Assembly (NCBI GenBank): GCA_965240325.2
Contig: OZ251240.1
Location: 496,001 to 560,000 of the forward strand
Direction of reading: 5' to 3'
Source: Rebecca billardiae RCC1528
Taxonomy: Eukaryota > Protista > Haptophyta
DNA length: 64,000 bases
The position numbers were made by a program, and so were the translations under genes. Below the pieces are notes generated by a model, which saw only the letters and a program-made list of their open reading frames with translations, was not told where the DNA came from and made no database searches. Positions 33,511 through 38,530 of this stretch are shown one piece after another. Each line of letters begins with the position of its first letter. The first letter of the stretch is position 1.

Positions 33511-34728
33511 TCAGTGATGGGGCGGCACCGGGCTGCGCGCAGAGCCGTGCCCGTGCACGGCCACCTCGACCTCTGCGAGCGCCAGTCCAAACTCGCCCAT
33601 CGCCGCGTACACGAGGTGCATGCGCGCACCGCCCGAGGCGTCGGCGTCCAGGACCACGTCCGGGTCACGCAAGGCGCGCTCTGGCCGCATCGCCTCGCCG
33701 CTGACACTCCTGGAGAGCTGCAGGCGGCCGCCCTCCAGCTCCAACTCGGGCTCGAGCACGGTCTGCGGCGCGCCCACGCGCCAGCTCGGCCACCGCGTGC
33801 CGACGATTGGCGCGGCGAGGATGCGCTCGGGCGCGTCCGGCGCCCACGTGTGCTCGTTTGGCACGACGCCCCGCCCCAACGCCCTGTCGCAGTAGCCGCA
33901 ACGCCCAATGTTGGTCCAGAAGACGAGGAGCTGCCCGCCTGGCGCGCGCACCACCGACGCATGGCGCGCGCCTGGCAGCAGCAGCTGGCCCTCGGAGAAG
34001 CGCTCGGTCGGCGGAGAGTGCAGCGGGCGGCGCACCAGGCTGATGCCGTCGTTGTCGCGCTTCATCACGGCGTACTCCATCCCGTCGTGCTCAAACGTGC
34101 GCAAGTAGAAGCAGCCGATGGCCGGTGGCGGCCGCGGGCTCTCCGCCGGCACGCTGAACGCGAGCCCGTCCGCCGAGTGCGCCTCCATCGTGCCCTGCCA
34201 GCACGACTTGCCGCTCTGAAGCCTGAAGCGCACCTTCTCGCCGTGGAAGTGCATGCGCAGCACGCGCTGCTGGTGGTCGGCGGTCACGTGCGGGCTGGAG
34301 ATGTGCTTCAGCCGCGCCTGAGCGCCCGCACGCGGCGCGTCCAACGCCGGCGCGCGGAGCACCTCGCCGATGTCCTCCCACGGCCCACGCACGCCCGCGC
34401 GGCTTCCCAGAGCGCGGATCGCGAACCCCATGTGGTGCCCGTAGTAGAGCAGGTGCGTGAAGTCAGACGCGAGCCAGGAGGGCACACGCACCAGGCTAGG
34501 GCCGTTGCACCCTGCTAGTCTGCCGCCGTCGAATCGCCCCGTAGCCGGATTGGCCTCGCGACAGTCGAGGAGCAGCGGGCTGAGCGAGCCGTTGCGGAGC
34601 AACACTGGCACGCGCGTTGCGCGGATGGTCGGCGCCGCGCCAGCGCCGCCGCTCGAGGCGAGTCGGAGGGCAAGTACGACCGTGAGCACCGCTGCACGAG
34701 CACGCGGCACGGGAGCGGACTCCAGCAT
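33511..34728 (-). CDS. Secreted protein resembling a bacterial GH32/GH43-like five-bladed beta-propeller hypothetical family
   Basis: Signal peptide (AAVLTVVLALRLA), then NGPSLVRVP.W, YYGHH.G..IR, GPW, HISSPHV, RMHFHG, SADGL.F, YLRTF.H.G, RHASV, VFWT.IG..DAPERIL, VLEPE...EG, LRDPDV, LVYA..GE.GLALAE. Intronless. Confidence 0.75.
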   Translation of the reverse strand: MLESAPVPRARAAVLTVVLALRLASSGGAGAAPTIRATRVPVLLRNGSLSPLLLDCREANPATGRFDGGRLAGCNGPSLVRVPSWLASDFTHLLYYGHHMGFAIRALGSRAGVRGPWEDIGEVLRAPALDAPRAGAQARLKHISSPHVTADHQQRVLRMHFHGEKVRFRLQSGKSCWQGTMEAHSADGLAFSVPAESPRPPPAIGCFYLRTFEHDGMEYAVMKRDNDGISLVRRPLHSPPTERFSEGQLLLPGARHASVVRAPGGQLLVFWTNIGRCGYCDRALGRGVVPNEHTWAPDAPERILAAPIVGTRWPSWRVGAPQTVLEPELELEGGRLQLSRSVSGEAMRPERALRDPDVVLDADASGGARMHLVYAAMGEFGLALAEVEVAVHGHGSARSPVPPHH

Positions 34729-35006
34729 TCGTTCACGGGATGCGCTGCTGCTGACCACTGATGCTGAAAAGAAATCAGCAGCATCGATCGAAAAAGAACG
34801 CATGTCAAATGGCAGGCTCGACCGAGCCGAGCGGTCGCAAATCCGCAAGCGGACCCGCGGTGGACATACAAGTGCGGACAGTTTTCAAGACACGATCAGC
34901 TACATGCATACACATGAAAAGCGACTAGAACATCGTGCAGGGACGACTGCGGGACTCTGCTGCGACGTGCCAACGTTGATGAGCGTCGGGCCCTAGACCG
35001 TCCGCG

Positions 35007-37591
35007 TCATAACGCCGCTGGCCGCTCGCACACGAAGAAGCCGACGGCCTCAACCGTCGCGCACTGCGCGTCAAACCAGCGCGTCCCCACGTCGCCCTGG
35101 GCGGGGCTGCGGATGTCGGGGCTGATCGTCGTGCCGGTTGCGGCGCAGTACCTCTCCGCCTCCCACGAGTACGGGACCTGCCACTTGGCGCCACGGTTGG
35201 GGAAGCCGGGCGCCCAGTTCACGTAGCCGCCGTCCGCACCGAGCGCGCCTCCGTCGGTCCACGCCCACGCACGGCCGGGCGGCGAGCTCGCGTCCTGCGA
35301 GAGGCCGATCCATGCGCTCGAGCTGTGCTGCGAGACGAGGCACGCGACGAACGCGTCCTCCGCGCGGTCGTCGATCCGCACGAGCCGCGCGCCCGCGGCG
35401 GAGCACTCTGCGTGCGCCTCCGCCCACTGCAGTGCGCGCCGGACGAGCCGGTACTGTGAGCTGCCGTGCCGCACCCAGCCGTCTGCGCCGACGGGCGCCG
35501 CGGACGTGACGCGCGCGCACGCGGCGCACGCCGCGCGCGCGGGCTCGCCCGCCCAGACGACGAACGCGTAGGTGAAGCTGATCGCGAGCGCGAGCAGCGC
35601 GAGGCGCCTGCTCCCGCGCGGGTGCGCGCGCGCGCCGGCGAGCAGCCGCGCTGGGACGCCGCCGAGCGCATGGCCGCCGCCGCCGCCACCGCCGCTGCCG
35701 CCAGCCGCGATGCCTCGGTCGGCGGCGGCGGCGCTGGGCGGGGGCGCGAGCTCCGCGCCCGACGCGCCGCCCGCTGTCTCCACCGCGCCCAGCTCAGTGG
35801 ACTTGGCGGCGGTGGTGAGCAGCCTGGCCGCGCGCTCGTTGAGCCGCTGCAGCGTGCCGCACGACGCGACGCAGCACATGAGCAGCCACGCGCGGTCCGC
35901 CTCGTACGTGCACTCGCACCGCGCCGCGTCGAAGCGGCCGAGCGCGTCCGAGCTCGGCCCGCCGGGCAGCGCGACCATGTGCACCTTGCCCGACGCGGCG
36001 GCGGAGCGCCCGTCGAGCTGCTCCTTGAGCTGCTCGAACATGAAGACCTCAGCGACCGGCCACATGCGCGAGAGGTACGACGGCCCCGTCAGCATCAGCA
36101 GCTGGCTGCAGCCCGCGAGGAAGATGGGCAGCAGCTCGATGTCCACCGAGGGCGACTGCAGGCAGTAGGAGTCGATCCACAGCACGGGCTCGCGGCCGTG
36201 CTGCTCGTAGAAGCGGTCCCGCCAGCGCGTGAGCCCGGCCCACCGGTCTTCCGCGGAGTCGCGCCACTGCGCCCGCGCGGGCGGGCGGGGGCGCGCGCGG
36301 GAGCGCCACGTGAGCGGGCGGACGGACGGCGCAGGCCGCCGCGCGCGCGCGGTGTGCCGCTGTGCCGCGGCGGTGCGGTGCCGCGGCGGTGCGGTGCCGC
36401 GGTGTGCCGCGGTGTTCCGCGGTGGTGCGGTGGTGCGGTGCCGCTGTGCCGCACCGAGTGCGAGACGAACGCGTCGATCTTGCCGAAGGGCATCGGCTGC
36501 GAGGCGGCGTGGGCGGAGGCGGCGGGATTCAGGACGTGCTCGTGCACGGCCTCGCGGGCGGCAGGCGTGCCGTCCGCCGAGCGCGCAAAGTCGTCGGGGC
36601 TCAGCAGGTCGTACCGGACGCCGCGCAGCCGCGCGCGCCCGCTCGCAATCGCCGCCTCGGGCGGGATGCCGCCGAGCAGGGACGCAATGCCGCCCGCAGC
36701 GGACATGTCCGCGCTGCTGCTTGAGAGCCAGGCGCGCACGCGCGCGCGCGCGCTGGGGGAGAAGGCGAACGCGCAGAACGCGCCGTGCTCCACCAGCCAG
36801 ATCGCGTCGTACGCCGACGCGCGGAAGTAGATCTGCTCGATGAAGTGGCCGAGCGACGCGTTCAGCAGCTGCGCGTACAGGCTGGCCGCCGAGTACAGCG
36901 TCACGTACCCAAAGCCGAGCTGGCGCCAGAGGGTGAGGTTGAGCAGCTCGGTCGAGACGGGCCGGGAGCCGTCGGCGCGCCGGCGCACGAAGCGCCCTGT
37001 GAGCGCCCACGCCATCGACCCGCTCACCAGCACGTGCGCGGTGGCCAGCACAAAGTGGGTCGGCACCTCGATGGCGAGCTCGGTCGCCGCCCAGCACGAC
37101 GGCGCGCGCACCAGCCGGGCGAGCATCGGCAACAGGAACTGGTTCGTGTGGAACACGATGAAGTACGCGAAGAAGGCACAGACCAGTGCGGCCGCCACGG
37201 CGTTGGCCCACGCGCTCCCAGGCGGCACGGAAAGCAGCAGGCCGGTGTAAGCCACGATGTTGAGCGTGGCGGTCAAGCAGTCGCCCTGGATCGGGTTTTG
37301 CGGGCGCCAGAGCGACCAGCCGCTCATCGTGTTGAGGGTGATTGCGCCCAATGCGGCGGATCCGATCAGTAGCGGCAGTACGCTCACGCGAGCCGCTCGC
37401 CACCGCCCCGCACGCTGCGCGGCCGTGAGAACCCGCCGGATGTTTTCGATGTCTCGCGAGGCGGGTTCGGCCGCAATGGCGACAGCATCTGCGACGACGA
37501 CGTTGGTCGGCGACTCGAGCTCGGGCGTGACCACAGAGCTGGGGCGCACGTGGACCCGCAGCGGCCAGCGAAGATGAGGCCAATACGGCAT
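35007..37591 (-). CDS. Multi-TM receptor-like protein: ~6 N-terminal TM, TIR/HET-like domain, TM, C-terminal C-type lectin; exons 37591-36455 and 36266-35007 (798 aa)
   Basis: The GT-AG intron 36267-36454 joins DAFVSHS|WRD. Then LWIDSYCL..LPIFLAGCSQLLMLTGPSYLSRMWPVAEVF, a TM (LALLALAISFTYAFVVWA), and a CTLD (GW......Y....LQWAEAHAEC...GARLVRI....E..FV......AWIGL...WAWTDG...YVNWAPGFPN...C....WFDAQC....FVCE). Confidence 0.82.
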
Positions 37592-37691
37592 TGGGCGGAG
37601 CTCTTCTTCACCCCTGCGGAGGGGGGGGGGGGGGGCACTTCACTCTGCACACAGCCCACCTTGTGAGCACAGCCCAGGCGGCCCGTCGCTA

Positions 37692-37917
37692 ATAATCGCC
37701 TGCCTGTGAGCTGTGTGTGTCTCTTATTCTTAAGTAAACTGTAGTCAATCTCTTAACCGATCATTATTATCTGCAGCCTGATACCCATCAAGCTGATGAC
37801 GAATCGACACATTTAATGATGATCACTCGACCCGACGCTGGGTCGAGATTCATTGCTCGCATATGTCGATGAAAACATACAGTTTACACGCACACAGCTC
37901 ATCAGGCAGGGCGAGAT
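37692..37917. repeat. Foldback/MITE-like element with imperfect terminal inverted repeats
   Basis: Left arm atcgcctgcctgtgagctgtgtgtgt...gtaaactgta (37695-37743) is mirrored by tacagtttacacgcacacagctcatcaggcagggcgagat (37878-37917). Internal hairpin ctcgaccc/gggtcgag. Confidence 0.6.
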
Positions 37918-38013
37918 ACAGTTCACTATGATTTAACGTGCACACTTGGTTAAGGCGTGATTAACGCCATCCAACACGCTCGCCATCTACTATAATCTCG
38001 CCTGCCTGAGCTG

Positions 38014-38530
38014 TTTTAAATTCCCCTTTATAACGGGCTCCGGGTGATCAGACTGGCGGCCGAAGCCTCCAGCCCTACCCTGGCCAGCCCCCAACCAACC
38101 ACCACCCTCACCCAACCTCAAACCACTGACCGATACACCGAGTGCCTTGACACCACTCCGCTGTGGACAGCCCGCCTCCAGAGGGGGCGGGGGTATGCCA
38201 TTGCCGACAGCATACAAGCCCAACACTGTGGGGTGGTCCCAGGTACCAGCAGTGCACTGCCTTGCAATTCGAGATCATCGAGTTTGAGCCGAGTCGGCAG
38301 ACTGGGCACCCCCTAGGGCGCCCCAGTGTGGGCAGAGGGCCAGCCACTAGCCGATCCCTGCGCGGGGGAGGGGACGGAGGGGGCTGTCAGCGAGCCCAGT
38401 AGCTGGGCAGGGGTCTGGGCCACTGGTCCTGGCAGTGAGGCGCCTGTATTTCACTCGTGCTGCTATGGAGGCAGATGGTGTCATGTCAGACATGTGTGCG
38501 ATATCGGGCATCAAGTCAGGGCGTGGGCCG
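38014..38530 (-). mobile_element. A-tailed retroposon-like (SINE or LINE 3' end) sequence, longer copy; 5' boundary approximate
   Basis: 38014-38159 is identical to the reverse complement of 63227-63372. The segment is relatively CpG-poor and ends ...ttataaaggggaatttaaaa on the minus strand. Confidence 0.55.

Follow-up and report, generated by a model that had tools for sequence, protein, structure and literature searches.

A candidate lectin-bearing TIR surface receptor in the haptophyte Rebecca billardiae and the algal six-helix membrane family to which it belongs

TIR domains recur throughout the innate immunity of bacteria, plants and animals, and to our knowledge almost nothing is known of them in the algae that drive ocean productivity. 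A 64,000-nucleotide stretch of the Rebecca billardiae RCC1528 genome (contig OZ251240.1, positions 496,001 to 560,000; hereafter the window, within which all coordinates are given) holds on its minus strand a gene that raises the question of whether a single algal protein can join an external lectin-like module to an internal TIR domain and, if so, what such a protein might do. We found that this gene, at 35007-37591, is predicted to encode a six-helix membrane domain, a TIR-superfamily domain with HET-type motifs, a seventh membrane helix and a C-type lectin-like domain (CTLD), in that order, giving a clean receptor layout of external lectin-like domain, membrane span and internal TIR. The reading of its structure and topology is supported by the results below, and the receptor role is one that we propose.

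Gene model and splice junction

An earlier sequence-only reading of this DNA had placed an intron at 36267-36454, splitting the string FVSHSW before its tryptophan so that no single open reading frame (ORF) shows the whole protein. This held up: the intron has GT-AG borders, lies in phase 0, and its removal restores colinearity with homologues. The gene is laid out as follows.

37591-36455 (that is, 36455-37591), minus strand: exon 1, 379 codons, starting at the first ATG downstream of an in-frame stop and ending KIDAFVSHS; it encodes a cytosolic N-terminal tail, six membrane helices, linker helices and the first TIR/HET strand (KIDAFVSHS)
36454-36267, minus strand: intron, 188 nt, GT...AG (GTGCGG...GCGCAG), phase 0, mostly a GC-rich tandem repeat
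36266-35007 (that is, 35007-36266), minus strand: exon 2, codons 380-798 and the stop, starting WRDSAEDRW; it encodes the remainder of the TIR/HET domain, a low-complexity linker, the seventh helix and the CTLD

Translation of the two exons across the phase 0 junction yields a product of 798 amino acids, with the exon 1 part ending ...PMPFGKIDAFVSHS. The exon 1 frame continues into the intron, the database ORF call P0001 spans the last 379 residues of exon 2, and the exon 2 frame stays open for 858 codons at a local G+C content of 68-72%. In DNA this GC-rich, wrong frames often remain open.

Both exon translations align end to end with KAG8461360.1 (Diacronema lutheri), KAJ1627824.1 (Pavlovales sp. 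CCMP2436) and environmental proteins. Exon 1 is colinear with full-length homologues in alignment, and relatives read uninterrupted across the junction as DAF(V/I)SHSW(H/R)D. A profile of the family matched the spliced protein over profile positions 3-168 with no gap at the junction, and neither exon contains a stop or a frameshift. We predict that 36454-36267 is a spliced intron, with homology supporting the junction. In P0045, a relative of 722 amino acids found on genomic contigs of 5.9 and 8.9 kb, the whole architecture is contained in one unbroken ORF. Because of this single ORF, and because the CTLD in the window shares an exon with the remainder of the TIR domain, the lectin is not a separate gene, and a separately transcribed lectin was rejected. 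Searching the window by tblastn with three parts of the protein revealed no second copy of the gene within it. The intron itself carries a tandem array at 36354-36452 of GTGCCGCG / GTGCCGCGGTGGTGCG units, in which an 8-nt unit repeats about 12 times or a 16-nt unit 5.4 times.

The TIR/HET domain and its algal family

The middle domain had been called TIR/HET-type on the basis of the strings DAFVSHSW, LWID, LPIFLAGC and LTGPSYLSRMWPVAE, all of which are present as quoted. Its two features of note are listed here.

35805-36496, minus strand: TIR/HET-superfamily domain, residues 366-533, the span including the intron; family profile score 175.8 bits
36048-36050, minus strand: Glu452 of W-P-V-A-E, at the position of the TIR catalytic glutamate; the window reads SRMWPVAE

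A word-index protein search with exon 2 returned no matches, and an exhaustive HMMER search nonetheless recovered a family: with residues 1-150 of exon 2 (the middle domain) alone as the query, we obtained 1,639 cluster representatives at E ≤ 1e-3, 746 of them at E ≤ 1e-10. Matches in such numbers, together with the 175.8-bit profile score, go well past anything expected by chance. An alignment of 91 copies of the domain has the consensus DAFxSHSWHD..KW.ALQ.WR..F...HGREP.VW.DK.CIDQ......L.CLP.FL.GC..LVVL.GPTYLSRLWCI.ELF.F ... FDA..C.C....DK.RLL. Scanning these 91 members against Pfam gave weak matches to TIR_2 in 60 (best E 5.4e-7) and to HET in 61 (best E 2.3e-3), with TIR matched in 13 and ThsB_TIR in 3; a few relatives also carry a precomputed PF13676 match. 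The window sequence falls below the gathering score of TIR_2 (PF13676) and TIR (PF01582). It likewise falls short of membership in HET (PF06985), for which the matches shown cover profile positions 43-63 of 146, the W-I-D-x-x-C-I-x-Q block only. As these thresholds are not reached, we file the domain as a TIR-superfamily domain with HET-type motifs, outside Pfam TIR, TIR_2 and HET.

Comparison with solved structures points to a TIR fold. All six matches of the family profile to sequences in the PDB are TIR domains (SNC1, SIGIRR, a plant TIR cyclase, TLR), and the alignment sets sRlWCivEl of the family on SStWCLnEL of SNC1, which puts the family glutamate on the plant catalytic glutamate. The fold was tested on an AlphaFold2 model of P0003:277-440, the closest complete relative, in place of the window's own domain; the model used the 91-copy alignment, which includes the window, and shows alternating strands and helices at high predicted confidence (pLDDT 90.8, pTM 0.84). 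Its top 49 Foldseek matches in the PDB are all TIR domains. With VIA-align the best matches lie at Z 9.7-10.2 over 110-130 aligned residues, among them AbTir (10.2), RUN1 and SARM1 (both 10.0), and MyD88 and RPP1 (both 9.8). In this model and these alignments the fold is that of a TIR domain and the motifs (W-I-D-x-x-C-I-x-Q, Y-x-x-R-x-W-x-x-x-E) are HET-like. The weak TIR_2 and HET matches across the family, the PDB profile matches and the P0003 model together bear out the original assignment, as does the alignment with SNC1 for its placing of the W-x-x-x-E glutamate at the catalytic position.

That glutamate is near-invariant, being kept in at least 90% of the family, and the window copy retains nearly all family-invariant residues, Glu452 included. 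The domain is extended at its C-terminal end by a helical part that bears a conserved F-D-x-x-x-C-x-C motif. In a viral structure library the sole match was a TIR/WD40 protein of Tetraselmis virus 1, a distant one (E 2.7e-4), and we saw no sign there of a viral copy of this TIR subtype.

The lectin fusion does not stand alone, a context that the sequence-only reading lacked; it proves to be the addition of a CTLD to a very large six-helix plus TIR family. Counted in sequence clusters, this family runs to well over a thousand among haptophytes and dinoflagellates, coral symbionts included. Its members come from dinoflagellates (Symbiodinium, Effrenium, Scrippsiella, Prorocentrum, Zooxanthella/Brandtodinium), the bolidophyte Triparma and haptophytes, and a few have been named automatically as 'TIR domain-containing' or 'Heterokaryon incompatibility domain-containing'. 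Three alignments and the 175.8-bit score place the window protein in this otherwise unnamed family, whose signature is a six-helix domain, an AAAxIAxLxG...RFR linker and DAFxSHSWxD...W.D..C..Q...LP.FL.GC...GP.Y..R.W...E...FD...C.C. As judged from these alignments, the conserved unit is six helices, linker and TIR, typically 450-550 amino acids in all. The conserved partner of the TIR domain is thus the six-helix domain and not the lectin, and the CTLD is a lineage-specific addition.

Lectins have been added at both ends of this unit. A C-terminal CTLD behind an extra helix is found in the window protein, P0023, P0045, P0039, P0035 and P0154/P0008, and in the fragments P0017 and P0021; an N-terminal CTLD behind a signal peptide, followed by an extra helix, is found in the environmental proteins P0226, P0091, P0229, P0230, P0231 and P0239. 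In a FastTree phylogeny of 210 TIR domains a single branch with a support of 92 separates the two sets, which suggests that the N-terminal and C-terminal CTLDs are separate fusions. Either arrangement puts the lectin across the membrane from the TIR domain. The same TIR/HET-like subtype (TM-score 0.77-0.84) is also fused to a heme NO-binding (HNOB) domain in haptophytes and to TPR repeats in diatoms, according to ESM Atlas clusters. Such modularity is expected of a signalling or effector domain with interchangeable sensors. One further relative, P0002 (1110 amino acids, ENA), contains two complete six-helix plus TIR units in tandem, its TIR domains lying around residues 310 and 807.

TIR-bearing membrane receptors are already known, haptophyte membrane TIR genes included. 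As far as our searches reach, the combination of CTLD and TIR, the six-helix plus TIR/HET core and the two independent lectin fusions are undescribed in the literature, and a search for heterokaryon-incompatibility domains in dinoflagellates, haptophytes and diatoms found no relevant literature.

Membrane helices, topology and the lectin-like domain

The remaining parts of the protein, from the N-terminal side to the C-terminus, are these.

36755-37396, minus strand: six-helix membrane domain, residues ~66-279, from an AlphaFold2 model
36497-36754, minus strand: cytosolic linker helices, residues ~280-365, with the motif AAGGIASLLGG...RLRGV; helices 279-291, 295-307 and 311-321 in the model
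35610-35804, minus strand: Ala/Gly-rich, low-complexity and disordered cytosolic linker, residues 534-598, variable at the same place in CTLD-bearing homologues
35547-35609, minus strand: seventh membrane helix, residues 599-619, hydropathy 2.03, preceded by RAHPRGSRR
35517-35528, minus strand: juxtamembrane C-x-x-C (Cys626, Cys629), just outside helix 7
35010-35501, minus strand: CTLD, residues ~635-798, with four canonical cysteines
35196-35204, minus strand: FPN in place of EPN, aligned to the EPN-position loop of MRC1 and DEC-205
35070-35078, minus strand: WFD in place of WND

We modelled exon 1 of the window with AlphaFold2 using 71 homologous N-termini (pLDDT 79.6, pTM 0.74) and obtained helices at residues 34-89, 100-120, 127-162, 166-207, 214-250 and 252-276. 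Six long helices in exon 1 and a hydrophobic one at 599-619 agree with the earlier count of about six membrane spans and then one more. The N-terminal region is weakly conserved in sequence (~20% identity), and the linker consensus AAAxIAxLxG...RFR directly before the TIR domain is near-invariant in the family. Foldseek found no match to the six-helix bundle in the PDB (best E 0.22), and the best VIA-align scores, Z 8.7 and 8.2 to a BAR-like protein and cytochrome b561, lie within the background for helical bundles. Assignment to a known fold was rejected on these two grounds, a Z within the helical background and a Foldseek E above 0.2. In the ESM Atlas the model matches only haptophyte hypothetical proteins, at TM-scores of 0.51-0.56. 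Protein-language-model features of 36497-37591 give weak leads to seven-transmembrane (7TM) receptors (Dicty_CAR, 7tm_2, GPR137, THH1/TOM1) with scores of 0.83-0.85, under the trust level, and a few G-protein-coupled receptors appear low in the fold lists for this domain.

The distribution of charge follows the positive-inside rule. Lysines and arginines in the loop flanks of the modelled helices number 6, 0, 5 and 6 where the loops are predicted to be inside and 1, 2, 0 and 2 where they are predicted to be outside, and helix 7, which has an equivalent in all homologues with a C-terminal CTLD, is flanked by 6 on the TIR side and 2 on the CTLD side. This distribution places the TIR domain inside and the CTLD outside, and it fits a predicted topology with the N-terminus inside, six helices, TIR inside, helix 7 and CTLD outside. 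A disulfide-bonded CTLD needs an outside location. The sequence-only reading had expected this arrangement and had named three findings that would count heavily against it; none of the three was seen, the model of the homologue having a TIR fold, the two domains being predicted to lie on opposite sides of the membrane and the lectin being on an exon shared with TIR sequence.

The CTLD is complete. It matches Pfam Lectin_C (PF00059) with an E of 7.1e-10 and 40 bits against a cut-off of 22.6, which makes it a member of that family, and a phmmer search of PDB sequences with exon 2 returned CTLDs only. It matches 129 CTLD sequences in the PDB at E ≤ 1e-3, including those of PLA2R, DEC-205, MRC1/2, CLEC10A, Dectin-1, NKG2D and LOX-1. 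Its cysteines lie in HAEC, RYC, AQC and FVCE. The loop alignments agree with the earlier observation that FPN and WFD replace the sugar motifs EPN and WND. A Ca2+-dependent carbohydrate-binding C-type lectin is recognised by EPN or QPD together with WND at Ca2+ site 2, a combination that the window protein lacks, and a canonical sugar-binding lectin was rejected on these motifs. Since two of the Ca2+/sugar ligands are lost, classical Ca2+-dependent sugar binding by this copy appears unlikely from its residues. Among relatives with a C-terminal CTLD the sugar motifs vary just as much, a QPD / W-H-D-like pair surviving in P0039 alone. By analogy with Dectin-1 or natural killer (NK) cell receptors, the domain may instead bind a glycan or a protein independently of Ca2+. 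What stands of the proposal of a one-protein glycan-sensing sensor-effector is therefore the single protein, the fold and the topology; the glycan sensing finds no backing, the Ca2+/sugar ligands being lost and the nearest solved single CTLDs including Ca2+-independent ones. Between helix 7 and the CTLD, the C-x-x-C is shared by all relatives with a C-terminal CTLD, reads (D/E)C(A/D)xC in P0045, P0023, P0039, P0035 and P0154, and may form an intermolecular disulfide or a metal site.

Proposed role, alternatives and genomic setting

With moderate confidence, we propose that the protein is a surface receptor of type-II-like layout in which binding of a ligand to the CTLD clusters membrane-tethered TIR signalling domains. 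The CTLD would face outward and bind an external ligand, probably outside the degenerate classical Ca2+/sugar site. Clustering driven by this ligand would gather the tethered TIR domains, whose self-association would turn on signalling as it does in Toll-like receptors (TLRs), SARM1 and plant and bacterial TIRs. The likeliest route would be NAD+ cleavage, leading to a signal of the cyclic ADP-ribose (cADPR) type or to NAD+ depletion, with the six-helix domain serving either as the effector or as a tether and a platform for oligomerisation; the likeliest setting would be the sensing of viruses, bacteria or other cells. There are precedents for several parts of this scheme in unicellular eukaryotes: early in infection by a virus, Gephyrocapsa huxleyi induces TIR genes that encode N-terminal membrane helices or an ectodomain (PMC12489294), cADPR isomers are made by several protist TIRs in which the glutamate is conserved (bioRxiv 10.64898/2026.04.20.719644), and Dictyostelium has a membrane-tethered TIR NADase that its tether probably restrains (PMC13142454).

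Known systems resemble the window protein in part. The G. huxleyi genes encode N-terminal membrane helices, or an ectodomain and one helix, followed by an intracellular TIR with the conserved glutamate, and their authors propose a receptor-like role on the basis of AlphaFold/Foldseek similarity to RPS4 and SARM1; no CTLD is reported for them, however, their evidence is transcriptional, and we liken them by their described architecture (PMC12489294). Dictyostelium TirC is a protist TIR held at the membrane by an N-terminal hydrophobic segment, a tether thought to restrain a toxic NADase, but it has a single helix and no ectodomain, is of recent bacterial origin and belongs to a different TIR clade (PMC13142454). 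Toll-like and IL-1 receptors likewise combine an external ligand module, a membrane span and a cytosolic TIR fold in one polypeptide, and TLR1, TLR2, TLR10 and IL-18R-beta match the model. Unlike the window protein, TLRs are type I proteins with a leucine-rich-repeat (LRR) or immunoglobulin ectodomain and one helix, whereas here the TIR lies between a six-helix domain and helix 7, carries HET-like motifs and is followed by a C-terminal CTLD. Membership in the TLR family was rejected, as Pfam found no LRR, there are seven helices and the TIR is N-terminal of the last of them.

Among the enzymatic TIRs (SARM1, RUN1, RPS4, SNC1, RPP1, AbTir, ThsB, SPARTA) are the best structural matches, at Z 8.5-10.2 and with the W-x-x-x-E glutamate aligned, although identity is only 10-19% and the window domain has its extra C-terminal helical part. 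Fungal HET (PF06985), which is regarded as a remote relative of TIR (PMC10197012), shares the motif blocks A-F/L-S-x-S-W, W-I-D-x-x-C-I-x-Q and Y-x-x-R-x-W-x-x-x-E, but HET proteins are soluble fungal proteins or the N-termini of NOD-like receptors rather than algal membrane proteins, and the matches here are sub-threshold. Type II CTLD receptors (Dectin-1, NKG2D, LOX-1, CLEC-2, Ly49), which are among the best single-domain PDB matches with E from 4e-10 to 1e-5, have the same N-in/C-out orientation and a C-terminal CTLD without the canonical Ca2+/sugar motif; where they have short tails of the ITAM/ITIM (immunoreceptor tyrosine-based activation or inhibition motif) type, the window protein has a TIR domain and six helices.

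Several observations weigh against the receptor we propose, or against parts of it. Many animal TIRs need no catalysis to signal. The window's own exon translations have no TIR or HET match in Pfam at E ≤ 1, NCBIfam and Pfam together giving Lectin_C only, and the TIR assignment rests on the family profile and on the model of a homologue that shares 42% identity with the part encoded by exon 2 of the window. The window has a proline (36057-36059; WC..E becomes WPVAE) at a position held by cysteine in at least 90% of the family, and the terminal branch leading to its TIR is long (1.27, the median being 0.46); this copy may be diverging in function. Two canonical Ca2+/sugar ligands are gone from the CTLD (E to F and N to F). 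Most family members have no ectodomain at all, and the core must therefore work without a lectin.

The proline, which replaces the near-invariant cysteine beside the tryptophan of W-x-x-x-E, also fits an account in which the TIR/HET domain is a non-catalytic scaffold and ligand recruits cytosolic partners through homotypic TIR contacts, as with TLRs and MyD88, with no NAD+ chemistry. The TIRs of MyD88, IL-18R-beta and IL-1RAcPb match the model as well as the enzymatic TIRs do (Z 9.2-9.8), but we judge such a scaffold distinctly unlikely given that the glutamate is kept both in the family and in the window and that, in several protist TIRs, a conserved glutamate goes with catalysis (bioRxiv 10.64898/2026.04.20.719644). 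Nor did an adaptor-like TIR partner turn up here, no search having been aimed at one. Rather unlikely, in our estimate, is a role in cell-cell recognition and not defence, be it mating, self/non-self discrimination of the fungal HET kind, adhesion, or prey or particle capture, in which the CTLD would bind a molecule on the surface of another cell. The HET-type motifs (W-I-D-x-x-C-x-Q, Y-x-x-R-x-W-x-x-x-E) and the weak HET matches in 61 of the 91 members would suit it, as would the allorecognition cell death mediated by fungal HET domains (PMC10197012) and the frequency of CTLDs in adhesion and phagocytic receptors, of which the mannose receptor and DEC-205 are among the matches. Yet the closest algal membrane TIR genes described so far are ones that virus infection induces (PMC12489294), and recognition of this kind differs from the receptor we propose in biological role, not in molecular mechanism.

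The six-helix domain could itself be the functional unit, a receptor-, channel- or transporter-like module regulated by the TIR tail, with the CTLD secondary and serving localisation or stability. Its core is conserved in most of the 1,639 representatives, which are mostly ectodomain-free; a near-invariant linker motif lies between helices and TIR, and the language model points weakly to 7TM receptor families (0.83-0.85). However, no solved fold matches the domain, the language-model scores lie under the trust level, and the fact that CTLDs were fused more than once, at either end, speaks for the importance of the ectodomain; we hold this account very unlikely. A paralogue in decay or an artefact of gene modelling, with the long open frame a by-product of about 70% G+C, is in our view extremely improbable. 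Wrong frames do stay open for hundreds of codons here (858 in the exon 2 frame), and the branch is long and the sugar motifs degenerate, but family-invariant residues are nearly all kept across both exons, the CTLD scores above its Pfam threshold, stops and frameshifts are absent, and the exon-intron structure restores exact colinearity with the Diacronema lutheri and Pavlovales sp. CCMP2436 proteins.

Beyond the clustering receptor itself, we entertain a wider and more doubtful possibility for the whole family. The six-helix plus TIR/HET core might be an unrecognised ancient surface-signalling system of algae (haptophytes, dinoflagellates and stramenopiles) that bridges TIR and fungal HET sequences, into which ectodomains were plugged independently to make pattern-recognition or allorecognition receptors. 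Clustering would activate the tethered NADase, and its product would act on the six-helix domain or on other effectors to bring about defence or cell death.

HET-type motifs on a TIR fold could help to settle how TIR and the fungal cell-death domain HET are related, and lectins fused independently at the N- and the C-terminus serve as natural experiments pointing to outside-in signalling. Should the domain turn out to be an NADase, it would open a way to study how algae sense viruses, bacteria or each other in blooms; if not, this is still a well-defined, uncharacterised family worth naming.

The surroundings of the gene have features of their own. At 37621-38040, just upstream of the start codon, a run of about 15 G is followed by about 400 nt whose G+C is far below that of the flanking DNA. 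This stretch holds a 14-nt inverted repeat (37707-37720 / 37888-37901) and may contain the promoter or represent a small inserted element. Directly downstream is a 445-codon ORF on the minus strand (33511-34848) without a Pfam match, which in such GC-rich DNA may not be a gene. Farther along the window, between 46000 and 62000, the G+C content rises to 80-84%, with a strong GC skew of up to 0.49 at 54-60 kb.

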